A DNA stretch of 64,000 bases, taken from positions 182,082 to 246,081 of IMG/VR virus record IMGVR_UViG_3300042691_042003; one strand, 5' to 3'. The notes beneath the pieces are model-generated. The model made no database searches. It worked only from the letters and a program-made list of their open reading frames with translations, and was not told the origin of the DNA. The position numbers were made by a program, and so were the translations under genes. Of this stretch, positions 6,264 through 32,048 are shown piece by piece; positions within the stretch are counted from its first letter, which is position 1; each line of letters starts with the position of its first letter.

Positions 6264-6533
6264 ATGCCTTATCGTCCACAACAAACACTTACTTTCAAAA
6301 TTGAAAGAGTTAAGCCGGAGAAGAAATATGCAGGAGCTTATAAAAAGATATTCGATATTCTTAATAGAGAAAGGACCTTCTCAGAAGTATATGAAACCGA
6401 TGATAGTGTAGGATTCGTAAATGGAACCTATTGGTTAACTATTTCTGAAACTCCTGATTGGAATGATCTCGAAGCTATACTAAAAATTCCTAACGTTAGC
6501 ATAGCTAAGGAGACCGAGATTCCTAAGATGTAA
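6264..6533 (+). CDS. Hypothetical protein
   Basis: ORF track; last codons ATG TAA come from the repeat module. Confidence 0.55.
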   Translation: MPYRPQQTLTFKIERVKPEKKYAGAYKKIFDILNRERTFSEVYETDDSVGFVNGTYWLTISETPDWNDLEAILKIPNVSIAKETEIPKM

Positions 6534-6619
6534 TATCCGTGTACCTTTTTCAGAAAAATAGATTTTTTTCTGAAAGAAAAATGTATTATATTAGCTTTAT
6601 CAAATTAAATAATACATTT
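6528..6619 (+). promoter_or_regulatory. ~90 bp repeated promoter module, copy 1
   Basis: ATGTAATATCCGTGTACC-Tn...TGTATTATATTAGCTTTATCAAATT; internal inverted repeat TTTCAGAAAAA/TTTTTTCTGAAA. Confidence 0.8.
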
Positions 6620-6883
6620 ATGAACAACGTTTCAAAACTTAAGCCTGGCAAATACATGAAGTCCTATGCTGTACTTCATATGCTCTATCAAATCTATCAA
6701 AAACCAGATCTTGCGGAAACCATAGAAAAGGTTTGTCCAATTCATAAAGGTGAATTCGGTGAATATTTCTCAATCGAAGATCTAAAATCTGTAGATCCAG
6801 AATTTTATAAGAATTTCTTACATAACGAAATCGTTACACATATCATCTTATCCGAAGAAGAAAAACTTAAAGCTTGGATCTAA
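6620..6883 (+). CDS. Hypothetical protein
   Basis: Start reassigned to ATG 6620 downstream of promoter module. Confidence 0.55.
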   Translation: MNNVSKLKPGKYMKSYAVLHMLYQIYQKPDLAETIEKVCPIHKGEFGEYFSIEDLKSVDPEFYKNFLHNEIVTHIILSEEEKLKAWI

Positions 6884-6884
6884 T

Positions 6885-7124
6885 ATGCAAAACGAACTTT
6901 TAAAAGAAGCCTGCAAAAAAGCAGTTAATCATCAGATTCACCTCGGAATCCAAAATGGATGGAGCAAAGAAACTGGAAATCTTTATCAAGCTCTAAGAGA
7001 GCATGCGATTCCTAATTCGGGAATTTGTAGAGATCTCGGTCGTTGTTACTATGCTCATTCATTTGATGTACGAATCGAAGATAAAGTTTACGTAGTTACT
7101 TATTCTGTAGATTCTAGCGATTAA
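6885..7124 (+). CDS. Hypothetical protein
   Basis: ORF track, abutting neighbours. Confidence 0.5.
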   Translation: MQNELLKEACKKAVNHQIHLGIQNGWSKETGNLYQALREHAIPNSGICRDLGRCYYAHSFDVRIEDKVYVVTYSVDSSD

Positions 7125-7519
7125 TGCCGAAACTTCTTAGAAATCGAACAACGGCTCTTCTTGCTCTAGAATGGTGCAAGAAAAAATGGAAGAAAAGTCG
7201 TTATCATTCAGATTATCCAAAAATTCGAATTCTAAATCGATCAGCAAGAGATCTTTATGGTTGGTACGACGAGGAAAAGAATCTCATCACCATCAATATG
7301 CATCTTAATCGTAGAGTTATTGATATCATTGATACAGTAATTCACGAATACACTCATTACACACAAGATTGTAAGAATCTCTATGATAAGCTATGGGAAG
7401 AGAATGCTCATCGTCCTTATCGAGAACATCCACTCGAAAGAGAAGCTTATCGAAGACAAGAGAAATACGGTAAAATCTGTAAATCTGAAATTGAATCTTG
7501 GTATGTAATATCCGTGTAA
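7124..7519 (+). CDS. SprT-like / zincin metallopeptidase domain protein
   Basis: YGWY...ITINM...IIDTVIHEYTHYTQ (HExxH)...PLEREA. Confidence 0.7.
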   Translation: MPKLLRNRTTALLALEWCKKKWKKSRYHSDYPKIRILNRSARDLYGWYDEEKNLITINMHLNRRVIDIIDTVIHEYTHYTQDCKNLYDKLWEENAHRPYREHPLEREAYRRQEKYGKICKSEIESWYVISV

Positions 7520-7594
7520 TAAAATTGTTAAAAAAGAATTTTTTCTTTCAAGTATTTATATTATATTAGCTATATCAAATTACAATAAAAACTT
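7503..7594 (+). promoter_or_regulatory. ~90 bp repeated promoter module, copy 2
   Basis: ATGTAATATCCGTGTAA...ATTATATTAGCTATATCAAATT. Confidence 0.8.
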
Positions 7595-7687
7595 ATGATA
7601 CTTTTAATCGCAACAGAACTTACACTTCTTTCAACGTTTGGTTCACTCTACATCATCGATCGTCTTAAAAGAAACAACGGCAAGTAA
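7595..7687 (+). CDS. 30-aa hydrophobic peptide (not in ORF track)
   Basis: MILLIATELTLLSTFGSLYIIDRLKRNNGK*, at the same distance from the module as other first genes. Confidence 0.5.
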   Translation: MILLIATELTLLSTFGSLYIIDRLKRNNGK

Positions 7688-7697
7688 AATCAATCTT

Positions 7698-7925
7698 ATG
7701 AAACAACAAGAAAAAATCTGGATTCTCTCTCTTCCTACTGAAATGAAGCTTATGATTCTTCAAGAAGCATATGTTCAAAACTTCGCTCATTTTATGCAAC
7801 TTTCTAAGTTGTTCCTTGATACACCAATCACTGATGGTGGACTCGCTACCGAAACAATCGATTCTGTCCTAACTAAGGTTCGTACAAATCCTTCTTCTTT
7901 CGTAAAATCTCAACAACCTATCTAA
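7698..7925 (+). CDS. Hypothetical protein
   Basis: Start reassigned to ATG 7698 (MKQQEKIW). Confidence 0.5.
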   Translation: MKQQEKIWILSLPTEMKLMILQEAYVQNFAHFMQLSKLFLDTPITDGGLATETIDSVLTKVRTNPSSFVKSQQPI

Positions 7926-7929
7926 TCCG

Positions 7930-8238
7930 ATGATTATCACATCTGAACAACTTCGTCAAGTAAATACGATTCAAACAATCGTCTCTCGAGTAACCGGAAT
8001 TAAAATGCTCGATATTTGTCAAAACTCTCGTAAAGCCGAAATCGTACAAGCAAGACATCTATCAATGTACTTCTGCCGATTCTATACTCGGATTACTACG
8101 AAAGAAATTGCAAAAGCTCATGGTAAGGATAATCATGCTACGGTTCTACATGCTTGCAAAATGATTGAAAATGATATTCATCGTAATCGTAAACTTCAAG
8201 AGATAATTCAAAAAATCAAGTCCGAACTAGGAGTATAA
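7930..8238 (+). CDS. Stand-alone DnaA C-terminal (domain IV) helix-turn-helix protein
   Basis: SRKAEIVQARHLSMYFCRFYTRITTKEIAKAHGKDNHATVLHACKMIE matches Bac_DnaA_C pattern. Confidence 0.85.
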   Translation: MIITSEQLRQVNTIQTIVSRVTGIKMLDICQNSRKAEIVQARHLSMYFCRFYTRITTKEIAKAHGKDNHATVLHACKMIENDIHRNRKLQEIIQKIKSELGV

Positions 8239-8245
8239 ATAACTT

Positions 8246-9020: not shown

Positions 9021-9117
9021 AACTAACTGGTCAAAAAAGTCATATAACCATTACAAGGGTTTCAAGGTAAAAGGAATACAGTAGTCACAGTTCAGTGATA
9101 AAATAAAATTAAAGAAT

Positions 9118-10005: not shown

Positions 10006-13596
<3,591 letters not shown>

Positions 13597-16164: not shown

Positions 16165-16210
16165 ATCATTTTTATGATTTTCTTAATATATAAAAAAATA
16201 GATTATAAAA

Positions 16211-16543
16211 ATGAAATGCCTAGAGAGTGTTATTAGAGACAGTTTAAGTGAAGCTTATACCGAAGAGAAAATAGATGAAATCATTGAACTTCTCTATTTA
16301 GATCTAGATGCATTCATTGGAGAGAAAATCGAAGATACAAAATCCGATTGTGAATCAGAAAAGGATTTTATTATTAAAGATTTAGAAGACGAATTAGGAG
16401 ATTTAAAAATGAACATAATAGAATTAGAAGACGAGTTGTCCGAAATCCGTAAGTACGTTCCTTATGAATCTTTACAAGATTATATGAAGTTAGAATGGAT
16501 TCGTAAGAATTGGGATACGATTCCGACTGCTAATTTTTATTAA
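16211..16543 (+). CDS. Hypothetical coiled-coil protein
   Basis: ORF track. Confidence 0.5.
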   Translation: MKCLESVIRDSLSEAYTEEKIDEIIELLYLDLDAFIGEKIEDTKSDCESEKDFIIKDLEDELGDLKMNIIELEDELSEIRKYVPYESLQDYMKLEWIRKNWDTIPTANFY

Positions 16544-16610
16544 CATTTTTCACTTTTATTTTTTTATTTGCGAAATTTGTTTTATATTTGTATAAATCAA
16601 TTAAAAGATT
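16544..16610 (+). promoter_or_regulatory. Bacteroidota-type promoter
   Basis: TATATTTG at 16583-16590 matches TAnnTTTG. Confidence 0.65.
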
Positions 16611-16910
16611 ATGACTTATAAAACAATTAAGGACATCAAATTCGAAGAACATCCTAATCCTTCGCATATCGGATTACAAGGAGTATTGGATTTCGAAAAT
16701 GGTTATGGGGTAAGCGTTATTACTACGATCCCTAGAGATGGAAAACCTTTCGGTGGATCCTACGGTGGAAATGCCGGTCTATGGGAAATAGGTCTTAGAA
16801 AACACGGTTCATTTCATAACGAATCTATTGGTAAATTCGAATCAGGAATTATCGGATGGTGCAACGATTCTGATGTTACCGAAGCAATGATTTTTCTTCA
16901 ATCTCTTTAA
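16611..16910 (+). CDS. Hypothetical phage protein
   Basis: F.NGYGVSVI...GLWEI motif seen in small phage proteins. Confidence 0.55.
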   Translation: MTYKTIKDIKFEEHPNPSHIGLQGVLDFENGYGVSVITTIPRDGKPFGGSYGGNAGLWEIGLRKHGSFHNESIGKFESGIIGWCNDSDVTEAMIFLQSL

Positions 16911-16913
16911 AAT

Positions 16914-18125
16914 ATGAAAACACTTATTTGGATTACTAATTCTTTCCGAAAAGACTCTCGTCTAACTAACGGAATTTCCGATCTTTGTACATTCGTTTAT
17001 TATTCACCTTACTACTTTGCTGGTGCTCGTGAACGTAACATTTACGAAAAATGTTCTCAACAAAATCTCGATGCTTTTTATCATTCTCTTCATTCATTTG
17101 ATACCGAACTAAAACATAAAGGTTTTCAAGGTCTTCTCGTATTTAAGGAATCGGATCCTATCGAACATATCAATCAACTCTGTGAAAAATGGAATTTCGA
17201 TAAAATCGTAATCGATCAACCACTTTTTGCAATGTGGCATTCGATAGATTTACTTCGTCTAAAAGTTCCTTATGAAATTATTGATTCAACTCTTATCGAC
17301 GATACATGTTTTAAAATGACTGCAAAATCTCGATGGATGTCTCATGTTAAACGAGTTCAAACCGAAAAGCCTTATCAATGGAACGAATCTATCGCACCTT
17401 ATTTCATTAAGGAAAATTCTCGTTCATATCCAATTCCTAAATCGGTAAGTCCTTTCCTTGATATTGAAGAAGTAATCGAACGTGCTAAAGCAATTGCACC
17501 TACATACGGTTCGACTCGAGATTCTCATAACGGTCAAACTCGTCTTTCAACTGCAATTCAAAACGGTATGGTCGATCCTCATAATCTGTTCTTCGAAATA
17601 GCTAAACAATTTCAAGAATCAGGTTCAGATCTTACCGTAAACGAAGGTGCTCATGCTGCAATGCTTCGTCAATTTGGTTTTCGTGAAATCAATATTATTT
17701 CTGCTCGTCGAAACGATCTTACAATGGAAAATTCTCCTCTAGAATGGGCAAAATGTATAATGCATCATAAGGCATTCGATAATATGATTTCATCTACACC
17801 AAAATCCGATTCGAAACTTACTATTGATGCAATCCGAAATGCAAACACAGGAATCGAAGAATTAGATAAAATTCTTTTCTCTTTCGTTCGAACTGGAATT
17901 ATGCCAAATCGTGCTCGAATGTATTTTGCAGGTAAGATTTTTTATGAATCAAAATCAGGCATCGAAGCTCTTAATTTGCTTATCGATACATTCGACCTAA
18001 TAGGTCTCGATGGTCAATCACCAAATAATTACATGCAATGCATTTCTTCTTTAGGTTTATCCTACGGTAAAGTTATGCTTATGTCATCTAAACGTACATT
18101 CGAATTGCTTAACTATCCAATGTAA
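16914..18125 (+). CDS. Divergent photolyase/cryptochrome-family protein
   Basis: LIWITNSFRKDS (N-term), TRLSTAIQNGMV, LRQFGFRE, TGIEELDKIL...TGIMPNRARMYFA, DG...NN correspond to photolyase FAD-binding motifs. Confidence 0.75.
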   Translation: MKTLIWITNSFRKDSRLTNGISDLCTFVYYSPYYFAGARERNIYEKCSQQNLDAFYHSLHSFDTELKHKGFQGLLVFKESDPIEHINQLCEKWNFDKIVIDQPLFAMWHSIDLLRLKVPYEIIDSTLIDDTCFKMTAKSRWMSHVKRVQTEKPYQWNESIAPYFIKENSRSYPIPKSVSPFLDIEEVIERAKAIAPTYGSTRDSHNGQTRLSTAIQNGMVDPHNLFFEIAKQFQESGSDLTVNEGAHAAMLRQFGFREINIISARRNDLTMENSPLEWAKCIMHHKAFDNMISSTPKSDSKLTIDAIRNANTGIEELDKILFSFVRTGIMPNRARMYFAGKIFYESKSGIEALNLLIDTFDLIGLDGQSPNNYMQCISSLGLSYGKVMLMSSKRTFELLNYPM

Positions 18126-18209
18126 TATTGATGTACCTTTTTTCAAAAAGTTGATTTTTTTCTTGTAGATATTTGTATTATATTAGCTATATCAAATTAA
18201 ATAATATTT
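18120..18209 (+). promoter_or_regulatory. ~90 bp repeated promoter module, copy 3
   Basis: ATGTAATATTGATGTACC...TGTATTATATTAGCTATATCAAATT. Confidence 0.8.
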
Positions 18210-19523: not shown

Positions 19524-19535
19524 AATCTTTTAAAT

Positions 19536-19985
19536 ATGTTAACCTCGAAACAATGTCTCGGAAAATACGGAGAACCTTCTAAAACAAATCCATGTATGAC
19601 TCTTTGGGATGTACCTTCTGATTTAGAAATTGGAATGATACCGAAGAAAATTTATTGTAATAAAGATCTTGTAAATCCTCTCGCAAAAGCTTTCAAAAAT
19701 CTAATAGACCGAGGTCACGTTAATGAAATTGTTACTTTTGATGGTTGCTTTAATATCCGTAAAAAGAGAGGATTAACTTCTATGTCTTTGCATTCATGGG
19801 GAGTAGCAGTAGATTTTAATGCATTTGCAAATCCTTTAGGTCTCTCTCGTCAGCAATGTATTGCTAAAGGTTTAAAACCATTTACCGAAGAATTTGTAAA
19901 ATGTTTTACCGATGCCGGATTTGATTGGGGAGGTAATTGGAATCGACCTGACGGAATGCATTTCCAATTGAAAAGTATTATGTAA
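19536..19985 (+). CDS. M15 family peptidase (Peptidase_M15_4 / L-Ala-D-Glu peptidase-like)
   Basis: FNIRKKRG...SLHSWGVAVD...FDWGGNW..PDGMHFQ. Confidence 0.85.
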   Translation: MLTSKQCLGKYGEPSKTNPCMTLWDVPSDLEIGMIPKKIYCNKDLVNPLAKAFKNLIDRGHVNEIVTFDGCFNIRKKRGLTSMSLHSWGVAVDFNAFANPLGLSRQQCIAKGLKPFTEEFVKCFTDAGFDWGGNWNRPDGMHFQLKSIM

Positions 19986-20070
19986 TATCTATGTACCTTT
20001 TTTGATCATTTTGAATTTTTTCTTTGCGATATTTGTATTATATTAGCTTTATCAAATTAATAATACATTT
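19980..20070 (+). promoter_or_regulatory. ~90 bp repeated promoter module, copy 4
   Basis: ATGTAATATCTATGTACC...TGTATTATATTAGCTTTATCAAATT. Confidence 0.8.
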
Positions 20071-20487: not shown

Positions 20488-20488
20488 T

Positions 20489-20875: not shown

Positions 20876-21281
20876 AATACACAGAAGAACGTAAAAAAAT
20901 AATCCGTACATTTCTCAACGACATGTTAGATCAAGCACACGATGCTAAGTATCGTCAATTAGCCGAGAACATCGGATCACCTTCGAAGAAAGGATCTGAA
21001 CTTTACGAAATGCACAAAAACGAATTTGAAGTTATCAGAAAGCTATATCATCAAGTAAATTCACTCTAATGGAAAATCAACCTATCAAAGCCGAATACTC
21101 TTTGCATAATATCGTTGAATGTATGTTACTTTGCGAAGACATGAGAAACCCAAATAATGGATTCATTGTTAATTCCGCATATAAATGGATTCGAGAAAAG
21201 ATTGAAAGAAATGGAGAGCTGACTACTGAAGATAGAGAAAACTTCATTCGAAAATTCTATCATCAAGGGAAGAACATGTAA
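20872..21281 (+). other. Two small hypothetical genes (20872-21069; 21069-21281 = paralog A)
   Basis: 21069-21281 MENQPIKAEY is paralogous to 23453-23665. Confidence 0.6.
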
Positions 21282-21365
21282 TATCCGTGTACCTTTTTTC
21301 AAAAAATAGATTTTTTTCTTGAAAGCTTTTGTATTATATTAGCTATATCAAATTAAATAATCTTT
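21276..21365 (+). promoter_or_regulatory. ~90 bp repeated promoter module, copy 5
   Basis: ATGTAATATCCGTGTACC...TGTATTATATTAGCTATATCAAATT. Confidence 0.8.
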
Positions 21366-22462
21366 ATGAACAACAACATTCTTTTCTCACTTCTACACGG
21401 TGCAAGCATTACCGGTACATTCATCGAAGGTTACCATTACGTCGAAGAAATGCTTCCGATTAATAAATCCGAAGAAGCTTTCAAATTCTGTAAATGGATC
21501 GATGAAAAAATCGGTGGTGCTGGAACCGGCAATATTCATATGCTTTACAAAGCTTTCAAAAATCCAAACGACGAAAATCTTCAAAAAGAAACAAACGAAT
21601 TAAGAAACAAAATTGCTTACCTTAGATCTCTTTAATCATGACAAAAGCATATCAAGTTTTCAAAGGAGAAGATCATTTAGGATTTACCTATTATGAACAC
21701 CAAGCTACTTACTTTAATCAAGATCAGGCTCTCGAACATTGCAAAAGAATAGTTGAATCTGATGAATTTAAAGATGAACAAATAGCAGAATACACGGTCG
21801 GAAATAAGAAACTATGGAATGCTCATGGATGGGAAATCTTAACTGTCTGTAAATTGGAAGAAATCGAAATTATCTAACATGGAAATACACATCAAAATCA
21901 AAGCACAGCGTTTCAAGAATGCTAATGAACTTTCAAATCCGAAGAAGAATTGGAAATCCGATGGGATACAGAAGTTCAAACTCTTCATTGATAAAGATAA
22001 GCTAATCGAAGATACTGAACGTTGCGTAATCACATTCAAGAAAATGCTCGATGGTATATCAAACGATAATCGAAAGTATCAATACATCGATTATGAGATT
22101 ATGGATCCGGTATCTATGTCTAGAGAAGAATTTGAACGTATTTACGAGATGCTTTCTTCAAATTGATAATCTGTAAAACGATTCTTTACTAATCTGTAAA
22201 ATAGAAAACTTCATTCATTCATTTACATATAATTAATATCATGAAAATATTAACAACTGATTTTTTAATTTTCTTTTCTGTAATTTGTGTTATTGGATTA
22301 GTTGTTTTACTCCTTACTTCTAATCCAATAGGAAGAAAAGCAAAAACAGATTCTTCGGCTTATTTTCGAATCGTAAAAATCGAAGGACGAGAATATATCC
22401 TTTCACATAAGCCGTTAACTCCTCTTCATTCGTGTTCTTGTAAATGCGATTCTGTTAAATAA
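21366..22462 (+). other. Small hypothetical genes: 21366-21635 (paralog B), 21638-21877 (paralog C), 21879-22166, 22241-22462 (N-terminal TM)
   Basis: ORF track; B and C have paralogs at 23182 and 23667. Confidence 0.6.
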
Positions 22463-22468
22463 AAACAA

Positions 22469-22545
22469 GGGCTCTTAGCTCATTAGGTTAGAGCAACTGA
22501 CTCATAATCAGTAGGTGGCTGGTTCGATCCCAGCAGGGCCCACCA
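22469..22545 (+). tRNA. tRNA-Ile2 (CAT, lysidine type)
   Basis: GGGCTCT/AGGGCCC acceptor, ACTGA-CTCATAA-TCAGT anticodon arm, GCTGG-TTCGATC-CCAGC T arm, encoded CCA; resembles IleX rather than fMet. Confidence 0.9.
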
Positions 22546-22556
22546 ATAAACCTAAT

Positions 22557-23087
22557 ATGAAAAAGAAGTACAAGTTTCCTCCGGTAGAATTAAGTGATAT
22601 TTGGGCTGCTCTATTTCCAGCAGATTTCCATCAGAAGTATCGATATCTAGGATCTGTTCCTTGGAATGAAGGTGGAGATATTCACGAAGCAATGGAACCT
22701 CTGGTTATCTTTATGGATTACAAAGCTCGTCCTTGGTGGTGTCCTCGTTTTGTTCTTCGTCTTCTTCATCTTTTTGGAGACGATAATTCCGTTGCTCGTT
22801 GCAGGAATTGGCATCTTAGTCAGCTTAAGCGTCGTCTTACTAAAGGGATTGGAATCTGGGATTACAAGACTAAATGGACAGATTACGATTTGCGAATCTC
22901 TATCTCAGGAGATGATCAGATGTATAATCTATCTGATGCTATAGAATCTCACTTCTATAAACGAGGATATAGAGAAGATCTTGCTGAGCAAATCAAAGAG
23001 ATTGATCCTGAAACAAAATTCACTAAAAACAATAACATTGAATCTCTTAAGGAAGAGCTTGAACGTCTAGACAGCGAAGAATCATAA
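22557..23087 (+). CDS. Hypothetical protein
   Basis: Start reassigned to ATG 22557 (track start lies inside the tRNA). Confidence 0.6.
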   Translation: MKKKYKFPPVELSDIWAALFPADFHQKYRYLGSVPWNEGGDIHEAMEPLVIFMDYKARPWWCPRFVLRLLHLFGDDNSVARCRNWHLSQLKRRLTKGIGIWDYKTKWTDYDLRISISGDDQMYNLSDAIESHFYKRGYREDLAEQIKEIDPETKFTKNNNIESLKEELERLDSEES

Positions 23088-23091
23088 GATC

Positions 23092-23181
23092 ATGTAATAT
23101 TGATGTACCTTTTTTTGATACTTTGATTTTTTTCAGAAGATAATTTGTATTATATTTACATTATCAAATTAAATAATCAAT
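23092..23181 (+). promoter_or_regulatory. ~90 bp repeated promoter module, copy 6
   Basis: ATGTAATATTGATGTACC...TGTATTATATTTACATTATCAAATT. Confidence 0.8.
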
Positions 23182-23918
23182 ATGAACAATATCATCTTTC
23201 ATTCTCTCGTTCTCGGAGCAAACGTTACAGGAACTTTCGTTGAAGGCTATCACTACGTAGAAGAAACTCTTCCGGTTAACAAATCCGAAGAAGCTCTCGA
23301 ATTTTGCAAATGGATCGATGAAAGCATTGGTGGCGCTTCAATTCGTAATATCGGCATCCTTTACAAAGCTTTCAAAAATCCTACAGACGAAGAGCTTTGC
23401 AAATACACAAACGAATTGAAAGAACGAATCTCATATATCAAATCTCTTTAATATGGAAAATCAACCGATTAAAGCTGAATATACTCTCGCAAACGTCGTA
23501 GAATGCATGAGTCTCTGCGAAGATATGCGAAATCCAAATAACTCATTTATCGTAAATTCTGCTTATCGATGGATTCGAGAAAAACTCAAAAGAAATGGAG
23601 AACTAACTACTTCCGATCGTGAAAGATTTATGGAAAAGTTTTATCATCAAGCTAAAAATCTTTAATATGACTCTAGCATATCAAGTCTTTTCAGGCGAAG
23701 AAAACAAGCATGGATTTCAGGAATACGAACTGAAAGCTACTTATTTCGATAAGCAAAAAGCTTTCGAACATTGCGAAAGAATAGCCGAAGAAACTCCTCT
23801 TTATGGAGATATTCTAGAATTTGATGGATGGTATGGTGATGGTAAATATTGCAGTTGGTCAGCTGTTGGATGGAACCGAGTCACTATCAGTAGAATGGAA
23901 CAAATCGAAATACAATAA
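23182..23918 (+). other. Paralog cassette B' (23182-23451), A' (23453-23665), C' (23667-23918)
   Basis: Clear similarity to 21366, 21069 and 21638 ORFs. Confidence 0.7.
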
Positions 23919-25671
23919 TGATGGACAGAATACAAATCAACGGAGTCTGGTACGTTCGTGAAGACTTCAATTACGTTCGAGAAAAGGAAAGAGAAATGAA
24001 TCTTACGTTCTCACAGACCTGCACGTACGAAACTGATGATTATTGCTGGGAAGCTACTCGTCTATATAAAGACAAAGAAACTTTCTATCCTGACATCGAT
24101 ATCAAATTCACAGATAAATCTTGGACCAAGCCATGGCAAGAAGAATACTGGGATAATAATGCCTGGATGAAAGGAGTTCTTGAAGAAGATCCTGAATCCA
24201 TATTTGAAGCTAAAAATAATATGAACGACGAAGGTATTGCAGATTTCCGAGCATTCCTTAAAAAACTTGTTGAACTCGAATGGTTAACGAAATAATAACT
24301 CCTGAAGAAAAAAGCGAATTGATTCTAAATAAATTTATTGAAATCATTACGCAAACCCCTGTTAAAAAAGGATCATCAATTGCCGTTGAAGAATATATGA
24401 CAGCAAAAGAATGTGCAGAAGCATGTGTTGATTTTATCTACGATTTTATGAAAGATGACGACGATTTACACGAATGCGGACATTTTGCAAATTCGAGATG
24501 GGTTGATTATTACGTAAAAGTTAAAAAAGCTTTATAGAAGATTATGAACATATATCATTTAGATGTCATCACCGGCTACAGTGATTACTCCGGTCTAGCC
24601 AAGTACGAGATCAAGGCCGATGGCTACGAGGCCTACAATTCAGGTTACTATTCCTTTTGGGTCAGGAAGTCTCGACCAGGAAAAACCAGATACGAAGATG
24701 AGGTCGTAGATTACATGGAAACCGTTGCCTCGTTTCCGATTGGCAGGACAATCATTACAAGCATAGAATACAGAGAATCATAACAAACACATAGGATTAT
24801 GATAGGACGATTACATAAACGCGAACATGATGAATGGGTCGTTACTTACACTGAAGTTAACGAAACAATCGATCTACAACTTCATCCAGATGATATAAAT
24901 AATCTTGTCGAATTAGATAGAATATTTGATAATCTAGAAGCAAGGATTGCATCTCAACCAAATGTCGAATTTGAAATAGTTAATCATCAGAAATTAACAG
25001 GATCGATAAAATACGCAAAATTGAAATATAATGATAAAGCTAATTAAAGAATTCTTTCTTTCAGGTATAGAAGCAAACAAATCAATTACAGAAGCGATGA
25101 ATGCTTCTACTAAATCTCATAACAAATCTCTTGAATGGTACGATGTTGTTATAACCAAGGAGATCAACAATCTCAATCTTCAATTTCAAAACAATACAAC
25201 TAATTTAGTTAGATTCTCAGATATGTGTTCTTGTAATCCTAAAAATGGTGGCAACGGAATATGCCATTGCACTGTTGGTGATAGATTAGTTTAAATTATA
25301 TGAATAAAGAATTCGTTCCGTACGAACAAGCGGTAGCACTCAAAGAACTAGGTTTTGATGAGCCTTGTTTAGGTTACTATCTAGCAAATACTTTATTTAT
25401 ATCTAATGATAATGTTTATAATTCAACAGACATTCCTGTAATAAAGGCTCCTTTGTATTCACAAGCATTTAGATGGTTTAGAGAGAAGTACGAATTGCAT
25501 TCTCACATATATTCAGACTTCTCTTGGAACATAAGTGGCGGGATCTGGGATTTAAACGGGTATGTTGATTCAAGATATGATTGGGATTCTGAACCTTCCA
25601 AAACATTCGAAGAAGCAGAACTCGATTGTCTCTCTAAGCTAATTGAAATCGTAAAAGAAAACAACAAATAA
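23918..25671 (+). other. Run of six small hypothetical genes (23918, 24280, 24544, 24799, 25031, 25300)
   Basis: Tandem/overlapping + strand ORFs. Confidence 0.55.
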
Positions 25672-25673
25672 AA

Positions 25674-25856
25674 ATGGAAATACTACAAGCACTCATAACT
25701 CTCGCCGTACTGCTAGGGTTTTACTTTGCACCAACTCTACTAGCTGGTCATCTGAAACATCGTCAATTTACAGGAATTCTTCTGCTAAATGTCTTTCTCG
25801 GATGGACATTCATCGGTTGGGTTGCTGCTTTAGTTTGGGCAGCACTAAAAGATTAA
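25674..25856 (+). CDS. imm: Superinfection immunity protein (T4 Imm-like)
   Basis: YFAPTLLA...ILLLNVFLGWTFIGWVAALVWA. Confidence 0.85.
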   Translation: MEILQALITLAVLLGFYFAPTLLAGHLKHRQFTGILLLNVFLGWTFIGWVAALVWAALKD

Positions 25857-25888
25857 ATCAAAGTATTCAAATTAACATATAATAATAT

Positions 25889-26131
25889 ATGAAAGCAAAA
25901 TTAGAATTTAATTTAGAAGATCCGGACGATTCAATGGCTTTTGATAGAGCTTCAAAATCTCTAGATCTTTGTTTAGCTCTTTGGGATTTTAATTCAAGGA
26001 TTAGAAGTCTTCTCAAATATCCTGCGGAAGGAATTTCGGATGAAGTCTATTCAACTCTTGAAACGATTCAAGACGAATTCCAAACTTGTCTAAGCGATCA
26101 TGGAATTGTTTTAGATAGATTGATTAGGTAA
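25889..26131 (+). CDS. Hypothetical phage protein
   Basis: MKAKLEFNLEDPDD...ALWD motif common in small phage ORFs. Confidence 0.55.
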   Translation: MKAKLEFNLEDPDDSMAFDRASKSLDLCLALWDFNSRIRSLLKYPAEGISDEVYSTLETIQDEFQTCLSDHGIVLDRLIR

Positions 26132-26140
26132 ATAAAAAAT

Positions 26141-26223
26141 GCTCGGGTGTTGTAATGGTAGCCAAGAAGGTCTTAAAAACCTTTGGGAAATTTCCCGTGC
26201 CGGTTCGAGTCCGGCCTCGAGTA
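26141..26223 (+). tRNA. tRNA-Leu (TAA)
   Basis: GCTCGGG/CTCGAGT acceptor, AAGGT-CTTAAAA-ACCTT anticodon arm, long variable arm GGGAAATTTCCC, GCCGG-TTCGAGT-CCGGC; no encoded CCA. Confidence 0.9.
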
Positions 26224-26262
26224 CTTCTGGCCAAGTATATATAATAAAAATACTTGGCAAAA

Positions 26263-26934
26263 ATGGATTCTTCAAAAGAAATTAAAAAGAGAATACAATT
26301 CGTTTATAAAACTACAAATTTATTAAACGGAACCTATTATATAGGAGTTCATTCTACTTGGAATATTGATGATGGATATCTCGGATCGGGAAAACGTTTA
26401 ATTAGATCGATAAAAAAATACGGGAAAGAAAATTTCAAAAGAGAAATACTTAAAGTTTTTAGTAATTATCAAGATGCTCTCAATTATGAATCATATTTAG
26501 TAAACGAATCTTTATTAGAAGATGAATTGTGTTTAAATTTAAAACCTGGAGGATCTGGAGGATTTTGTAATAATGAGCATAAAGAAAAATTTATAGAATC
26601 TCTTAAAAATTCACAAGAATATGCATCAAAAAAAGGTAGAGAAAAAATTTTATGGCTATTAGAAAATGACATCGAATGGAAAACTAAATATTCTAATAAC
26701 ATAAAAGAAGGTCTTAAAAAATCTAATTTCGATTTTTGCACATTTAAAGGAAAGAAACATACTGAGGAATCAAAACAAAAAATTAGAGAATCTATGAAAG
26801 GGAAAGGCTCTTCTGAATCTAATTCCCAATTTGGTACTCGATGGATAACTAATGGAATTCAAAATAAGAAAATTAATAAAGAAGAATCTATTCCTGAAGG
26901 TTGGATTTTAGGAAGAAAATTAAATTTCACTTAA
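26263..26934 (+). mobile_element. Free-standing GIY-YIG homing endonuclease (Seg-like) with NUMOD3 repeat
   Basis: FVYKTTNLLNGTYYIGVH...DGYLGSG; KGKKHTEESKQKIRESMKG; adjacent to tRNA. Confidence 0.85.
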
Positions 26935-27056
26935 ACTGAAACATATAAAGGAAAAAATATTAAAAATAAATAATCTCTGGGTGACTGTGGCACATACCTT
27001 AGCCTTAAACCTCGAACCTGGGACCGAGATGGTTGGTAGCAATTTGAGATTATTAC

Positions 27057-27146
27057 AGTCAGGTAGCAGAATAGGAAAATGCTATACTTAAGCAGAGCAA
27101 GCTGGGTAATTGCTCTTTACAGGTTCGAATCCTGTCCTGACTACCA
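27057..27146 (+). ncRNA. tRNA-like repeat copy 1 (no canonical anticodon arm), ends ACCA
   Basis: AGTCAGG/CCTGACT acceptor, ACAGG-TTCGAAT-CCTGT T arm, 36-nt middle with AGAGCAA/TTGCTCT hairpin. Confidence 0.7.
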
Positions 27147-27150
27147 TATT

Positions 27151-27291
27151 ATGAGAAGCAAAACTTTTCAACGAATTCTAGATAAAATGGAAAGAGATCC
27201 GTGGTATATCAAGCTCAAAAGGTCTTTTGTTGTTGAATTGTTTGTTATTCGTAGATTAGGAATTATTAAATATATCAAACATAGAATATAG
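27151..27291 (+). CDS. 46-aa ORF between tRNA-like repeats
   Basis: MRSKTFQRILDKMERDPW...; its TAG overlaps the start of repeat copy 2. Confidence 0.5.
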   Translation: MRSKTFQRILDKMERDPWYIKLKRSFVVELFVIRRLGIIKYIKHRI

Positions 27292-27401
27292 TCAGGATGC
27301 GTAATGGTATACGCTAGTAACATATGGCATTGGTCTACGTAGTACTCTAACTATGTGCATATGAAGAATAGAAAATGCAGGTTCGAATCCTGTCCTGACT
27401 A
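27290..27401 (+). ncRNA. tRNA-like repeat copy 2
   Basis: Same acceptor and T arm, D arm GCGTAATGGTATACGC, 62-nt middle with ACGTAGT/ACTATGT hairpin. Confidence 0.7.
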
Positions 27402-27415
27402 CAAAAAATAAATTT

Positions 27416-27554
27416 ATGGAAGAAGATGAACGATGTCCAAATTGTGGTGAGTGTGAAAACATTCATACAAATTTTGATTGGAGTGAACCTTGATAGACCT
27501 GTAGAGGAATATCTGTGTAATGAATGTGGAATTTATTTTTTACCAAAACAATAA
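27416..27554 (+). pseudogene. Frameshifted zinc-ribbon ORF
   Basis: MEEDERCPNCGECENIHTNFDWSEP* then, after one extra base, DRPVEEYLCNECGIYFLPKQ* (CxxC...CxxC). Confidence 0.55.
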
Positions 27555-27557
27555 AAT

Positions 27558-27677
27558 AGTCAGGTGGCGGAATTGGTTAGACGCTACTGTGGGGCGATAC
27601 CACTCTGTTAAAAACAGCATAAGTTTTTACAATGAGGTACCAGTTGTAAAATGCAGGTTCGAGTCCTGTCCTGACTA
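27558..27677 (+). ncRNA. tRNA-like repeat copy 3
   Basis: AGTCAGGTGGCGGAATTGGTTAGACGC...GCAGGTTCGAGTCCTGTCCTGACTA; 68-nt middle with three hairpins. Confidence 0.7.
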
Positions 27678-27692
27678 CTAAAATCTAAAATT

Positions 27693-27926
27693 ATGAAAAA
27701 ACAAGAAACTCTTGAAGAGGCATCTTGGAAATATAATCCATTAAAAAAACTTGATGGTGAGTTTATAAGAGAGGCTTTCATTAAAGGTGCTCAATGGCAA
27801 TCTGAAAGAATGTATACTTATTATGAACTAAGACAGATTGCATATAATGCTTATTGTAAAGGTCATTTAGATAATCCTACAGAAAATGAATTTAATCTTT
27901 GGGTACAACAATATAAAAAGAAATAA
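27693..27926 (+). CDS. Hypothetical phage protein (KQETLEEA family)
   Basis: MKKQETLEEA...FIKGAQWQSERMY. Confidence 0.6.
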   Translation: MKKQETLEEASWKYNPLKKLDGEFIREAFIKGAQWQSERMYTYYELRQIAYNAYCKGHLDNPTENEFNLWVQQYKKK

Positions 27927-27937
27927 ATAGAAAAGAA

Positions 27938-27959
27938 TCCTGTCCTGACTACTAAAATC
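27938..27959 (+). repeat. 3' stub of tRNA-like repeat (att-like direct repeat)
   Basis: TCCTGTCCTGACTACTAAAATC identical to 27664-27685. Confidence 0.85.
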
Positions 27960-29270
27960 ATGAAGAATCATCTATCAATAAGTCCTATAGACGGCAGATA
28001 TCACGACCAAACTCAATTTTTACACAAGTACTTTTCTGAATATGCTTTAGTTAAAAACCGAGTAAGAGTAGAAGTTGAATATCTCATTAAGCTCGTAGAT
28101 AAGATTCTTCCTAATCGATTAACTAATGTAGACAGGAATTATCTAAGACTTATATATAAAAATTTTAGTGAAGAAGATTTTCAAAGAATCAAGAGAATCG
28201 AAAACGAAATTAAACACGACGTAAAAGCAGTAGAAATATTTCTAAGAGAAAGAGTTTTCGAAGATCTTAAATGTTATGTTCATTTCGGTTTAACTTCACA
28301 AGATGTAAATAGTATTTCTTATTCTCTGGCTTTAAGAGAATGGTATAGTGAAAGTGGATTTACAGAAATCTACAATTTGAAAGAGCAAATCGAATCTCTT
28401 TCTGAACGTTGGTGGAATATTCCAATGGTTTCTAGAACTCATGGTCAGCTTGCTTCTCCTACTCGTTTAGGTAAAGAAATGAAAGTTTTCTCTTATCGAT
28501 TAGAACGAAAAGAAGAAATCATATTCACATTTGCAAAGTTCGGTGGAGCCGTTGGAAATGCAAATGCTCACTATGCAGCTTTTCCTAATGTCGATTGGGA
28601 AGAATTCTTCGAGCAATTTGTAAATTCATTCAATCTAGAAAGATCCGAATGGACAACACAAATCGATTCATATGATAGCTATGCAGAAAGATTCAATCGT
28701 CTTTCAGAAATTTGCACTATCCTTCTCGACTTTTCTAGAGACATTTGGCAGTATATTTCTTTAGATTATCTAAAGCTTAGAGTCGAAGAACATGAGGTCG
28801 GATCTTCAACGATGCCCCATAAAGTAAATCCAATTAACTTTGAAAATGCAGAAGGAAATCTAGGAATTGCAATTGCTCTGTTCCGACATTTTTCCGAAAA
28901 GCTTCCTGTAAGTAGACTACAAAGAGATCTATCGGATTCAACAGTTCTACGAAATATAGGAGTTCCTATCGCACATATGCAAATAGCTATCAATCAACTT
29001 TCTGAAGGACTTGAAAAGCTAGAAGCTAATGAAGAGAAGATTCGTTTAGATCTGTATTCTGATTGGTCGATCATTACTGAAGGTATTCAAACAATTCTTA
29101 GAATTCACGGATTTGATGATGCTTATGATCGATTGAAGACTTTCTCTAGAGGCAAGAGTCCTCTTTCTCTTTATGATGTTCATAAATTTATTGATTCTTT
29201 AGAAATTCCAGAGCATATAAATAAAGAACTTAAATTAATTACTCCTGAAAATTATATCGGTCGTAATTAA
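27960..29270 (+). CDS. purB: Adenylosuccinate lyase
   Basis: ISPIDGRY, HDVKAVE, VHFGLTSQD, SRTHGQLASPT, GSSTMPHKVNPINFENAEGN, SRLQRDLSDSTVLRN. Confidence 0.95.
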   Translation: MKNHLSISPIDGRYHDQTQFLHKYFSEYALVKNRVRVEVEYLIKLVDKILPNRLTNVDRNYLRLIYKNFSEEDFQRIKRIENEIKHDVKAVEIFLRERVFEDLKCYVHFGLTSQDVNSISYSLALREWYSESGFTEIYNLKEQIESLSERWWNIPMVSRTHGQLASPTRLGKEMKVFSYRLERKEEIIFTFAKFGGAVGNANAHYAAFPNVDWEEFFEQFVNSFNLERSEWTTQIDSYDSYAERFNRLSEICTILLDFSRDIWQYISLDYLKLRVEEHEVGSSTMPHKVNPINFENAEGNLGIAIALFRHFSEKLPVSRLQRDLSDSTVLRNIGVPIAHMQIAINQLSEGLEKLEANEEKIRLDLYSDWSIITEGIQTILRIHGFDDAYDRLKTFSRGKSPLSLYDVHKFIDSLEIPEHINKELKLITPENYIGRN

Positions 29271-29274
29271 CACA

Positions 29275-29345
29275 TGCGAGGTAAGGAAATGGTATCCGCT
29301 AGGGCTCATAACCCTTGATTCTCAGTTCGAATCTGAGCCTCGCTA
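29275..29345 (+). tRNA. tRNA-fMet (CAT, initiator type)
   Basis: 1-72 mismatch, GCGAGG/CCTCGC acceptor, GGG-CTCATAA-CCC anticodon arm, CTCAG-TTCGAAT-CTGAG. Confidence 0.8.
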
Positions 29346-29347
29346 CT

Positions 29348-29438
29348 AGTCAGGTGGCGGAATTGGTTAGACGCAAAAATAGAATTAGTAAGGTCGTAAC
29401 CCCTTTACAATTTACAGGTTCGAATCCTGTCCTGACTG
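29348..29438 (+). ncRNA. tRNA-like repeat copy 4
   Basis: First 27 nt identical to copy 3; ACAGGTTCGAATCCTGTCCTGACT; 39-nt middle without canonical anticodon arm. Confidence 0.7.
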
Positions 29439-29540
29439 CTGATCAGTTTTCTGGTGGTAACGGTCGAAAGACTTCTGTAATCAAAATCCAAGAATTGCTC
29501 CTCTGGTTCTTGGGCTAAATGAGGAAAGAAAACCAGAACT

Positions 29541-29613
29541 ACGCTGTTAGTTTAATTGCATAAAACCCGGCCCTTCTAAGGCTGATTTACAGGTTGGAGT
29601 CCTGTACGGCGTA
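29541..29613 (+). tRNA. tRNA-Arg (TCT), atypical T and D loops
   Basis: ACGCTGT/ACGGCGT acceptor, CGGCC-CTTCTAA-GGCTG arm; T loop TTGGAGT, D loop lacks GG. Confidence 0.75.
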
Positions 29614-29668
29614 CTAATCGAACTTTTATTTTAATAAAATTAGAATATATAATAAAATAAAGGTTCGA

Positions 29669-30490
29669 ATGGAAAAATTAGATATAAGCGTTTATAATTG
29701 GAAATATATCCAAGAAAAACATAATAATGGAGCTTTCCTAAAAGATTTAGGTGTTACAAGGAAAGCTATAGAACAAGCTATAGAAAAAGGTCTTTTTGTA
29801 AAAATAAAAAATACAAGGAAGTGGTCAGAAGAAGAAAAAATAGAAATTTCAAAAAGACGAAAAAAATGGCTATCGGAAAATCCTGAAAAACATCCTTGGA
29901 AAAAAAATACTAAATTTAAATCTATTCCTTGTGAATTTTTAAAAAATAATCTTAAAGAATTAAACATAGAATTTTTTGAAGAAGTAACTATTAGTAAAGA
30001 AAAAAATTATTCAGCAGATATATTAATACCTTCAAAAAATTTAATAATTGAAGTTAACGGAAATCAACATTATGATAAATTAGGAAAACTTATACCATAT
30101 TATCAAGAAAGGCATGATTTTATTTCTGCTTTAGGATGGAAGATCTTAGAAATTCATTATTCATTAGCATTTAATATAGATTTTTGTAAAACTTTAATAA
30201 TTAAAGAACCGGAAAAATCCGAAATTTTACCATTTTATAAAAAAGAAAAAAGAAAAAATGTTAAATATGGTAATCGAGAAGATTACTTAAATGCTAAAAG
30301 ATTAGAATATGAAGAAAAAAATAAAGAAAAGATAATTTTAATACAAAATTCAAATATTGAATTTTCTAATTTTGGATGGGTTTCTAAAGTTTCTAAAATT
30401 TTAAATATAAAAACTCAGAAAGTTTCATTATGGATGAAAACTTTCATGCCGGATTTTTATGAAAATCAATGTTTTAAAAAGAAAAAATAA
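29669..30490 (+). mobile_element. Free-standing PD-(D/E)XK (DUF559/Vsr-like) endonuclease, probable homing endonuclease
   Basis: YSADILIPSKNLIIEVNGNQHY...RHDFISALGWKILEI; Lys-rich; adjacent to tRNA. Confidence 0.75.
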
Positions 30491-30492
30491 AT

Positions 30493-30526
30493 ACTTCTAT
30501 TTGGTTCGACTCCAAATGGAAGTACT
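30493..30526 (+). ncRNA. tRNA minihelix-like hairpin (acceptor + T arm only)
   Basis: ACTTCTA-TTTGG-TTCGACT-CCAAA-TGGAAGT-A-CT: 7+5 bp stem, canonical T loop, same ACT 3' trailer as local tRNAs. Confidence 0.55.
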
Positions 30527-30548
30527 AAGGATAAATAAAATAAATTCC

Positions 30549-31391
30549 ATGTACAAAACAAAAACCTATCACGTACTTGTTCAAAAGATGCGTGAATTTT
30601 TTTTATCTAAAGGTTTTATTGAGGTACCTACGCAATCAAGACTTTCTATACTTGCTGCTTGCGAAAATCCTCATTCAATCACAACTTTCAATTATCAAGG
30701 AGAAGTTTGGCCTCTTCCACAAACTGGACAAATGTGGTTAGAATATGAACTTCTCAAAAATCCAGAATGGCCAGGTTGCTTCTGTATTTCTACATCTTAC
30801 CGTCAAGAGAAGAATCCAATTCCTGGTCGTCATGAACTTATTTTTCCAATGTTCGAATTTGAATCTCGAGGAACAATGGAAGATATGTTACTTTTAGAAG
30901 AGGAGCTGTTAAATCATTTAGGATTTGATGCTCCTTTTGAAGCAAAATACGACGACCTTTGTCAAGAATATGGAGGAGTTCCTATTCTTGAAAACGAACA
31001 CGAGCAAAGAATGTGGGATGAAAAGGGTTCAGTAGTTTCTCTTCAACATTTCCCTCTAAGAACAAATCCTTTTTGGAATATGAAGCATAACGATAACGGA
31101 ATCTTCAATAAGGTAGATGTTATCCTCTATGGTCAAGAAACTATCGGTTCTGCCGAACGTAGTTGTGACGTAGAAAAGATGAGAGAAATGTTTTACACAA
31201 TTGAAGGAGGTAAATATTGTGAAAAACTTTTCGAACTTTTCGGTAAAGACCGAGTTGAAGCCGAACTTGAAGAATTCTTCAAACATGATTTTTTCCCTCG
31301 TTTCGGTGGAGGAATTGGAATGACTCGTCTTGCAAGAGCATATGAGCATCTTAAGAAAGATGTGCTAGTTGCTGATGCACTAACAGCTTAA
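30549..31391 (+). CDS. Class II aaRS (Asp/Asn/Lys-type) catalytic core lacking anticodon-binding domain
   Basis: Motif 1 FFLSKGFIEVPT, motif 2 YRQEK...GRHELIFPMFEFE, ETIGSAER, motif 3 RFGGGIGMTRL; no N-terminal OB fold. Confidence 0.8.
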   Translation: MYKTKTYHVLVQKMREFFLSKGFIEVPTQSRLSILAACENPHSITTFNYQGEVWPLPQTGQMWLEYELLKNPEWPGCFCISTSYRQEKNPIPGRHELIFPMFEFESRGTMEDMLLLEEELLNHLGFDAPFEAKYDDLCQEYGGVPILENEHEQRMWDEKGSVVSLQHFPLRTNPFWNMKHNDNGIFNKVDVILYGQETIGSAERSCDVEKMREMFYTIEGGKYCEKLFELFGKDRVEAELEEFFKHDFFPRFGGGIGMTRLARAYEHLKKDVLVADALTA

Positions 31392-31409
31392 TCGAAATCT
31401 TTTCGATTG

Positions 31410-31441
31410 AAAGGTACATGATGTAATATTCATGTACCTTT
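31410..31441 (+). terminator. Terminator hairpin overlapping promoter module copy 7
   Basis: AAAGGTACATGA-TGTAATAT-TCATGTACCTTT then T tract. Confidence 0.8.
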
Positions 31442-31509
31442 TTTTTATTTATTGAATTTTTTCTTTCGAGAATTCGTATTATATTAGCTATATCAAATTA
31501 ATAATAAAT
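31421..31509 (+). promoter_or_regulatory. ~90 bp repeated promoter module, copy 7
   Basis: ATGTAATATTCATGTACC...CGTATTATATTAGCTATATCAAATT. Confidence 0.8.
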
Positions 31510-31956
31510 ATGAATCTCGAAAAAATCAATCAACACTTCTACGAAGGAAATCTCACAAACACCGAGAAAACTCTTTATCGTACCGGGTACAATTTCATCC
31601 TCGAAAACAAAGGAACCCCAGAAGAAGCACACCAATACGGTCTCAAACAAATCGAGAAAATCTTCAAACTTCGTAAACTTGCAAAATCTGGTCAAATCCT
31701 TACATACTAATTTATGACAGAATCCGAAAAAAATTCTCTTCAATTTCCTGTAAAAGGACTTTCCGTTTGGTTCAATAACCGTAAAATGTTCGGTGTTCGA
31801 ACTCTTATGGAACGAAGACATCCCAATCGAGATCACCTATCACATTACGAAGTGTATACTCTTCTCGTAGATCGAGTAGGAATTCTCACTGAAACTCTCG
31901 GTTACATTCAGACTCTCGAAAGTGATTGTGCCTCTGGTAAACTTTCTCGGATGTAA
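31510..31956 (+). other. Two small hypothetical genes (31510-31710, 31714-31956)
   Basis: Second ends in ATG TAA from next module. Confidence 0.55.
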
Positions 31957-32048
31957 TATTGATGTAATAAAATTATAAAAAAAGATTTTTTCTTGTCAAT
32001 CTTTTGTTTTATATTAGCTATATCAAATTACAATAAAAACTAAAAATT
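31951..32048 (+). promoter_or_regulatory. ~90 bp repeated promoter module, copy 8
   Basis: ATGTAATATTGATGTAA...TTTTATATTAGCTATATCAAATT. Confidence 0.8.

Follow-up and report, generated by a model that had tools for sequence, protein, structure and literature searches.

The 64,000-nucleotide (nt) stretch of DNA analysed here, which we call the window, comprises bases 182082-246081 of the 246,081-bp IMG/VR record IMGVR_UViG_3300042691_042003 and carries, among many small genes, dispersed copies of a cassette of about 90 nt. Judged by alignment of its roughly 20 copies, the cassette appears to be a repeated promoter that fills the space from an upstream stop codon to the next ATG, a reading that the analysis supports. 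The record has a 69-bp terminal repeat; CheckV puts its completeness at 80%, though terminal repeats are present. Nearly all genes lie on the + strand, and the standard genetic code suffices without recourse to an alternative one. The virus is a myovirus, with a 1,111-amino acid (aa) tail sheath that is 46% identical to that of an uncultured megaphage and 33-38% identical to those of Tenacibaculum and Flavobacterium phages, the nearest among isolates. Its host is probably a freshwater Bacteroidota, because Shine-Dalgarno-like 4-mers are few at -20 to -5 (21 of 318 genes, against 41 of 289 control windows), one phage protein has a weak match to a type IX secretion system (T9SS) sorting domain, the promoters carry -7 boxes of the Bacteroidota kind, and the public runs holding the sequence, the majority of them labelled fungus metagenome, include smaller holders labelled freshwater, aquaculture, plankton and estuary metagenomes.

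Cassette copies from stop codon to start codon

Eight copies had been listed in the original prediction, with starts at 6528, 7503, 18120, 19980, 21276, 23092, 31421 and 31951, and all eight are present in the sequence as claimed. The window holds 13 occurrences of their left border, ATGTAATA, where 4.4 would be expected, and no shuffle out of 100 reached that number. The described continuation is also borne out: ATGTAATA is followed by T-N3-TGTA with either CC or AT, by A/T tracts, and by the core TATTATATTAGCTWTATCAAATTA exactly 56 nt on, which is replaced in copy 23092 by TATATTTAC. The spacing to the next ATG, given earlier as 89-98 nt, is 87-98 nt from the motif start.

The first copy (6528..6619; + strand, as are all features described here) is of the TGTACC subtype; the open reading frame (ORF) upstream of it, 6264-6533, ends in PKM* on the TAA of the motif, and the next ATG is at 6620. 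The second (7503..7594) belongs to the TGTAAT subtype, with an upstream ORF (7124-7519) that stops on a second TAA at +14 and an ATG at 7595. The ORF that begins there (7595-7687) encodes a hydrophobic peptide of 30 residues and falls below ordinary ORF thresholds. The copy at 18120..18209 follows a photolyase-like gene (16914-18125, ending in YPM*) and precedes an ATG at 18210, while that at 19980..20070 lies between an ORF with a peptidase M15_4 match (19536-19985, ending in SIM*) and an ATG at 20071. Two copies sit among paralogous small genes: 21276..21365 separates gene A1 (21069-21281, ending in KNM*) from gene B1 (ATG at 21366), and 23092..23181, whose -7 box reads TATATTTA, separates gene D2, which ends at 23087, from gene B2 (ATG at 23182). 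The last two are 31421..31509, found after a gene for a class II aminoacyl-tRNA synthetase (aaRS)-like protein (30459-31391) and before an ATG at 31510, and 31951..32048, of the TGTAAT subtype, whose upstream ORF (31714-31956) ends in SRM* and whose ATG is at 32049.

Genome-wide, the core has 16 strong copies (up to five mismatches); every one is on the coding strand, and the reversed control yielded none. These strong copies are confined to 163-230 kb of the genome, among small genes, and ATGTAATAT stands exactly 56 nt 5' of the core in 12 of them. It is in these 12 that the left edge is sharp, with an information content of 0.02-0.47 bits at columns -30 to -1 and a maximum at column 0. Four ATGTAATAT copies just upstream of the window were absent from the original prediction, which also overlooked three strong cores without the motif (5157, 45110 and 47658) and three weaker relatives of the cassette (near 16583, 38054 and 41028) inside the window; a profile search of the genome with the core finds some seven weaker copies. 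The variable trinucleotide between ATGTAATAT and TGTA is CCG, TCA, TGA or CTA, and two subtypes follow TGTA, namely CC with a run of T or AT with a run of A. All four combinations of the CCG and TGA trinucleotides with the CC and AT subtypes are found, and the copies are mosaics of shared variants.

The claim that the motif donates Met-stop ends to five upstream genes proved correct, and a sixth case, PVQM*, lies upstream of the window. Taking the 12 copies together, six upstream ORFs end in Met-stop on the motif TAA, one stops at the second TAA (+14) and four end 7-32 nt before the motif; the copy at genome position 175637 is separated by about 200 nt from the end of the nearest called gene upstream. 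TAA-T-ATG junctions number 16 genome-wide. Photolyase orthologs share the sequence ...LLxY and then vary, ending in YPM* before ATGTAATAT and in YDC* before TGTTAATAAC (TGT TAA). Gene A2 (23453-23665), which is 80% identical to A1 and has no cassette, ends in KNL* on a TAA homologous to that of A1, so that the last codon alone differs (ATG in A1, CTT in A2). The element overlaps gene ends and would impose their final residue, an effect best read from these comparisons as a by-product of tight packing.

The -7 box and the distal element

A core-based metagenome scan returned 30 contigs, of which 8 are from this phage, 8 are chance matches and 14 are from relatives. Contig stretches are labelled L0xx (L022 and L024 belong to this genome, and L052 is identical to the window), and G001 and G002 are related jumbo-phage records. 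A 226,529-bp relative from the Joint Genome Institute, with 81% photolyase identity, was compared by gene-size map only. A near-identity search of a phage collection with window positions 16000-24000 gave no match, and exact-pattern scans of IMG/VR with the core, or with motif plus core, gave nothing beyond chance matches in unrelated phages. A related-locus search using the photolyase protein alone also gave no match, whereas an alignment-based scan did find relatives.

In the aligned copies of this genome the strong members read TATATTAG at the -7 position and about six weaker ones read exactly TATATTTG. G001 and G002 each contain 17 copies of TGTTAATAAC with TATATTTG 36-50 nt on, all on the coding strand and with none in the controls. 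The Bacteroidota promoter has a -7 box with the consensus TAnnTTTG (TAHHTTTG) and a TTTG at -33, and T-12, A-11, T-8, T-7, T-6 and G-5 of the -7 box are nearly invariant (PMC6847099, PMC9723704). TATATTTG is an exact match to this box, and the strong copies agree with it at seven of eight positions. The cassette also resembles promoters of the Bacteroidota primary sigma factor in its A/T-rich upstream turns and in its short leaders without a Shine-Dalgarno site. It departs from them in an A at -6 in the strong copies, in about 25 further conserved positions in leader and spacer, and in a distal element at -60 or -71. Two other assignments were ruled out. A sigma-70 promoter scan gave 55 sites against 65.7 expected and did not flag the cassettes, and the idea that TGTACC and its T-run form a second, tandem -7 box fails on the TGTAAT subtype, which lacks it.

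A search with a good control found no beta-subunit-like RNA polymerase gene in the phage, and a search without a positive control found no T7-like RNA polymerase. The phage does encode two sigma factors. One, of 238 aa with regions 1.2, 2 and 4 (genome 165467-166183; L024:5467-6183), lies behind a ATGTAATAT cassette module, and the other, of 202 aa and resembling extracytoplasmic function (ECF) sigma factors (genome 124199-124807; L022:4199-4807), lies directly behind a canonical TGTTAATAAC/TATATTTG promoter; their positions suggest a sigma cascade. Because of the -7 box match, the absence of a phage polymerase from these searches and the presence of sigma genes, we infer that the cassette is read by the host RNA polymerase core, with either the host primary sigma factor or one of the two phage factors. 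Transcription would start some 5-8 nt after the -7 box, giving a conserved, A/T-rich leader of about 20 nt that has no Shine-Dalgarno site. Counted from this predicted start, the distal element ATGTAATAT would occupy approximately -71 to -63 and a second half-site, TGTA(CC or AT), -59 to -54. Phased T/A tracts, or in some copies a terminator hairpin, would come next, then a T7 run at -36 to -30, TTTG at -19 to -16, the -7 box TATATTAG, the leader and the ATG.

The distal element takes more than one form. In relatives the core is preceded by (A/T)TGTTAATAAC and not by ATGTAATAT, and TGTTAATAAC also precedes weaker promoters of this genome, in one case inverted at the usual distance. Outside this genome, ATGTAATAT is found after the 81%-identical photolyase in L060/L061, where the left end is identical over 18 nt, and at least seven cassettes of the L086/L087/L092 lineage, where the core has diverged, have it at their head. 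Across at least six lineages the distance from the distal motif to the -7 box is quantised: from TGTTAATAA it is 47/48 in 26 copies, 58/59 in 10, 69/71 in two and 38 in one; from ATGTAATAT it is 59 in 13 copies and 48/49 in seven. In L043 the distal motif stands in tandem. These alignments indicate a distal promoter element with two forms, ATGTAATAT and TGTTAATAAC. The steps of one helical turn, the tandem copy and the inverted copy therefore point to a protein-contact site facing polymerase rather than to a recombination scar. Class I activator sites and UP elements provide points of comparison, CRP sites, for example, being spaced one helical turn apart upstream of -60. As with class I sites, the sites here are about one helical turn apart and can be tandem or inverted; unlike UP elements, the distal motif contains GC and is sequence-specific.

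Six further members of the promoter family in the window display this variety. Those at 5101..5185 (core 5157, ATG 5186) and 47602..47688 (core 47658, ATG 47689 of a 629-aa gene) lack ATGTAATAT, and the ortholog of the latter in L032 has TGTTAATAAC instead. The member at 45065..45144 carries TGTTAAAAAC, followed by a GC-containing hairpin (45080-45105) and a T-run abutting core 45110, a layout that is identical in its L051 ortholog. Of the weaker members, 16537..16610 pairs an inverted distal motif (TTATTAACA) with the canonical -7 box TATATTTG, which lies at 16583 (ATG 16611), 38038..38107 combines TGTTAATAAC with TATATTAG (ATG 38108), and 40981..41052 combines TGTTAATAA with the canonical box TATATTTG at 41028 (ATG 41053).

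In the L086 lineage conservation extends about 15 and about 60 nt further to the left of the motif, and the sharp border is therefore limited to genomes in which a gene abuts the element. Within that lineage, L086 15540-15660 and L087 14710-14830 contain the reverse complement of ATGTAATATTTT some 60-80 nt 5' of the forward copy, and other copies of the L086/L087 lineage share a conserved ATGGTACA...GGCATAGCGCTTCT block upstream. The border would be the functional edge of a phased upstream element combined with tight gene packing. As we propose it, the distal element is a putative protein-contact site that would have to face polymerase, and both its helical-turn spacing and its sharp outer edge would arise because of this requirement. 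Genes would be packed so tightly that an upstream ORF would run into the element and use its TAA.

Over the 60 nt 5' of the core, similarity among the copies of this genome is 0.68-0.82, which is higher than their similarity to orthologous promoters in relatives (0.38-0.60); the hairpin copy 45110 is an exception. The roughly 20 dispersed copies, each offering some 90 nt of homology, would probably support occasional homologous exchange and homogenisation, as do the promoter early stem-loop (PeSL) cassettes of T4-type phages. Taken together, we regard the cassette as probably a composite promoter of a Bacteroidota myophage, with a phased distal element and read by the host polymerase core, whose copies serve as dispersed homology.

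Several points weigh against this interpretation. All 16 strong copies have A at -6, where the T of the host consensus is nearly invariant; therefore a phage sigma factor may read them, and they could be middle rather than early promoters. Among the public runs holding the stretch, none is on record as RNA; the read evidence comprises four runs over 5,801 bases, all of them Logan contigs of DNA, which carry no depth, start or strand information. The orthologous cassette of the 81% relative scores 0.78 against its ortholog and up to 0.82 against paralogs, a comparison without phylogenetic resolution, and part of the homogenisation might stem from selection for a binding site specific to the lineage instead of gene conversion.

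The A at -6 leads to an alternative that we consider possible although unlikely, in which the TATATTAG cassettes are middle promoters for a phage sigma factor and the role of true early promoters falls to the canonical TATATTTG copies. The box types differ by a single base, have common flanks, leader and distal elements, and swap at orthologous or equivalent positions in relatives, all of which speaks against this alternative; in its favour, ATGTAATAT-type cassettes of relatives also have non-canonical boxes (TATATTTA and TACCTTTA). The phage has sigma factors that could make such a distinction, and the location of the ECF-like gene directly behind a canonical promoter would suit it; the 238-aa sigma gene, however, is itself downstream of a ATGTAATAT cassette, and neither factor is tied to any motif.

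Gene shuffling around the cassettes

The original prediction took the cassette for a mobile regulatory unit that recombines at a fixed point. What is supported is a promoter cassette, PeSL-like, in a region of shuffling genes; what is not supported is a fixed recombination point at ATGTAATA, as this motif is a phased promoter element. Comparison of gene content, made among relatives with no very close pair that differs in content, shows modules that differ or sit elsewhere, sometimes right beside a cassette. A block D-E-F (genome 164.1-165.5 kb) is found in L060 directly 5' of a cassette and the photolyase, 33 kb from its place here. Paralogous small genes at 21069..23918 occur in rearranged order (A1, cassette, B1, C1 against cassette, B2, A2, C2), with identities that fall from A, given above, to 69% for B and 43% for C. 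Cassette 23092 and six genes lie between D2 and E2, beginning exactly at the end of D2, whereas in the paralogous block (genome 164.1-165.5 kb) the much shorter interval between D1 and E1 holds only an unrelated gene of 95 aa and a stretch resembling the 85-aa gene at 24280-24537. The module 19980-21275, bounded by cassettes, is seemingly absent from the 226-kb relative according to the gene-size map. It includes an ORF (20489-20875, 128 aa) that matches the cREC_REC (cyclic-phosphate processing receiver) domain at E = 1.3e-22. In two relatives, too, a homolog of the 66-aa gene at 31510 comes first after a promoter, with different neighbours, and most inter-promoter genes of relatives have no homolog here.

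The positions at which genes are gained or lost vary. A direct repeat of 11 nt, TCTTTAATATG, lies at the plain gene junctions on either side of A2; L060 lacks two genes (18589-19232) in the middle of a module, and gene B is not promoter-proximal in other relatives. The photolyase/cassette junction is stable across relatives of 68-100% protein identity and is inherited vertically. Contigs 98-100% identical to the phage cover seven of the 12 cassettes, whose flanks are unaltered, and they differ only by deletions of 56 and 20 nt within ORFs, which look like dispensable genes decaying in the population. The 56-nt deletion (18837-18892, in L035) affects ORF 18541-19005, which is also absent from the 81% relative, and the 20-nt deletion (45193-45212, in L056) affects the ORF starting at 45145. 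Joints between cassettes do occur in contigs (21327>18172, 21319>20034 and 20065>21365) at 4-8x depth; they run through 30-34 nt of shared core, with uncovered gaps adjoining, could be circles, tandem duplications or assembly artefacts, and weigh on neither side. Rearrangements thus fall at plain gene junctions with short direct repeats and, in the contig joints, inside the core. Neither a tyrosine recombinase (PF00589) nor a serine recombinase (PF00239) was found in the 246-kb record by searches that included positive controls, and no fixed breakpoint, recombinase or clear recombinant molecule was found in the genome, relatives or contigs compared. Two endonucleases, a SegE-like GIY-YIG enzyme with a NUMOD3 motif (26254-26934) and an HNH-like enzyme (29669-30490), may be homing enzymes and would offer local gene conversion a further route.

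That the cassette inserts and excises with early-gene modules by recombination at its ATGTAATA border is, in view of these results, very unlikely. In 12 copies that follow unrelated genes the border has no blurring at all, and the motif TAA terminates six of those genes; the placement of the D-E-F block in L060, the interval after D2, the missing 19980-21275 module and the contig joints are all arrangements that such a mechanism might produce. Other results speak against it. Several lineages conserve the motif as a phased promoter element, and in the L086 lineage the conservation continues to the left; the photolyase junction and the flanks of seven cassettes are unchanged; whole-gene insertions and deletions also take place at ordinary junctions without a cassette, through short direct repeats; and the joints, in low-depth de Bruijn contigs, may be artefacts. 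Crossovers in genuine PeSLs fall at variable internal places and not at the edge of the element (PMC2839356, PMC4122927). The cassettes differ likewise from integron- and att-like cassettes in having no cognate tyrosine or serine recombinase and no single junction position.

PeSLs are described as elements of about 100 bp that extend from stop codon to ATG; besides sigma-70 boxes they have a stem-loop, a Shine-Dalgarno site and a stretch rich in A/T (PMC2839356, PMC4122927). Clustered in hyperplastic regions, they recombine at internal points that vary, and mini-circles result (PMC2839356, PMC4122927). Set against this description, the analogy drawn in the original prediction holds in architecture and setting: a self-contained promoter among small, fast-turnover genes, with one copy fused to a terminator. 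Like a T4-type PeSL, the cassette spans the distance from upstream stop to ATG (87-98 nt from the motif start; in 11 of the 12 copies the upstream ORF ends within the element or no more than 32 nt ahead of it). It brings a promoter of its own, to which some copies add a terminator stem-loop, sits in clusters among small ORFans that vary between related phages, and exists in copies similar enough to serve as dispersed homology. Unlike PeSLs as described there, with their sigma-70-like -35 and -10 boxes, it is built on a Bacteroidota -7 box, has a convincing stem-loop in only three or four of its 16 own copies, and possesses an extra sequence-specific, helically phased distal element that overlaps upstream stops. 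Mini-circles and recombinants were demonstrated for PeSLs, whereas exchange here is deduced from sequence; differing modules and mosaic copies fit a PeSL-like recombination.

The strongest of the stem-loops is an intrinsic terminator hairpin at 31409..31442, which confirms the one claimed at 31410. With 13 pairs (-22.3 kcal/mol, z = -5.7) it has by far the longest stem of the + strand terminator-like sites in 17000-33000, the stems of the other two being of 5-6 pairs; the distal motif of cassette 31421 forms its loop and 3' arm, and the T tract of that cassette forms its T-run. Folding agrees with the statement that the other copies lack the left arm. Copy 6528 has an A/U-rich hairpin between distal motif and core (-16.3 kcal/mol, z = -2.45) and copy 45110 an internal one (-14.1 kcal/mol, z = -3.5); significant folds, found in three or four of the 16 own copies, are common in the relatives G001, L039, L050 and L098. 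It is most unlikely that the left part of the cassette (ATGTAATAT...TGTACC and the T-run) is a terminator remnant or a processing signal of the upstream transcript and not part of a promoter: it does coincide with one strong terminator, a T-run does follow TGTACC in seven of 12 copies, and GC hairpins with T-runs do occur inside cassettes of relatives and in some own copies, but 11 of 12 copies lack both the left arm and a significant fold, a T-run is absent from the TGTAAT subtype, hairpins where present lie downstream of the distal motif and not over it, and the helical phasing to the -7 box, together with one inverted copy at the same distance, indicates a site acting at the level of DNA.

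Neighbouring genes and a candidate binding protein

An Rfam scan found tRNAs and a transfer-messenger RNA (tmRNA) only, and the cassettes had no match. The tmRNA gene (43409-43806) scores 70 bits in Rfam, with an ARAGORN-predicted tag peptide of 29 residues. The tRNA genes lie among the cassette-driven modules, at 22469-22545, 26141-26224, 27057-27146, 27558-27677, 29275-29346, 29348-29438 and 29541-29614, and comprise Met (two), Leu (two), Arg and two detected by Rfam only; tRNA-Met accounts for a depth spike of several thousand in contigs mapped to the window. Auxiliary genes encode an adenylosuccinate lyase (27960-29270), the class II aaRS-like protein (30459-31391), which is of the D/K/N type, the photolyase-like protein (16914-18125), which is widespread in related phages, and a UPF0227-PAP2 fusion (5186-6262), which is split into separate genes in the relative L098. 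Just 5' of the first cassette cluster, at genome 169847-175431, are three tandem paralogs of 594-634 aa with 23-28% identity and no family match.

The gene at 7930..8238 encodes a stand-alone DnaA domain IV (helix-turn-helix) protein of 102 aa (Pfam PF08299, E = 1.2e-20, above cut-off). Such a gene is present in every genome with TGTTAATAAC promoters (this phage, L098, G001 and G002), genomes that are not phylogenetically independent, and three more distant, incomplete records have neither TGTTAATAAC promoters nor the gene. TGTTAATAA reversed is TTATTAACA, which matches the DnaA-box consensus, TTATNCACA, at eight of nine positions. The distal element (TGTTAATAAC and its derivative ATGTAATAT-N3-TGTA) might accordingly be imagined as the operator of this protein, a candidate binder that we put forward as a lead of low probability. 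Literature text searches returned no description of these motifs and nothing relevant on phage DnaA domain IV proteins. If the idea is true, 20-35 promoters would be switched on or off together by a single small factor, sitting at -60 or -71 on one side of the helix, and this factor would represent a new kind of phage transcription regulator, taken from a replication initiator. The same cassettes would then also be PeSL-like recombination substrates in this family of Bacteroidota jumbo phages.

The transcription signals of Bacteroidota phages are poorly described, and here one alignment gives a full promoter architecture for a family of freshwater jumbo phages. Its upstream element would be sequence-specific, helically phased and strong enough to set the last codon of upstream genes. 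The PeSL idea, that is, self-contained promoter/terminator cassettes that double as recombination substrates in hyperplastic regions, would thereby extend, in architecture and genomic setting, beyond the T4-type phages of Proteobacteria and Cyanobacteria. The cassette is also a strong promoter candidate for the genetics of Flavobacteriia, and it may help to mark out transcription units when metagenomic contigs of jumbo phages are annotated.

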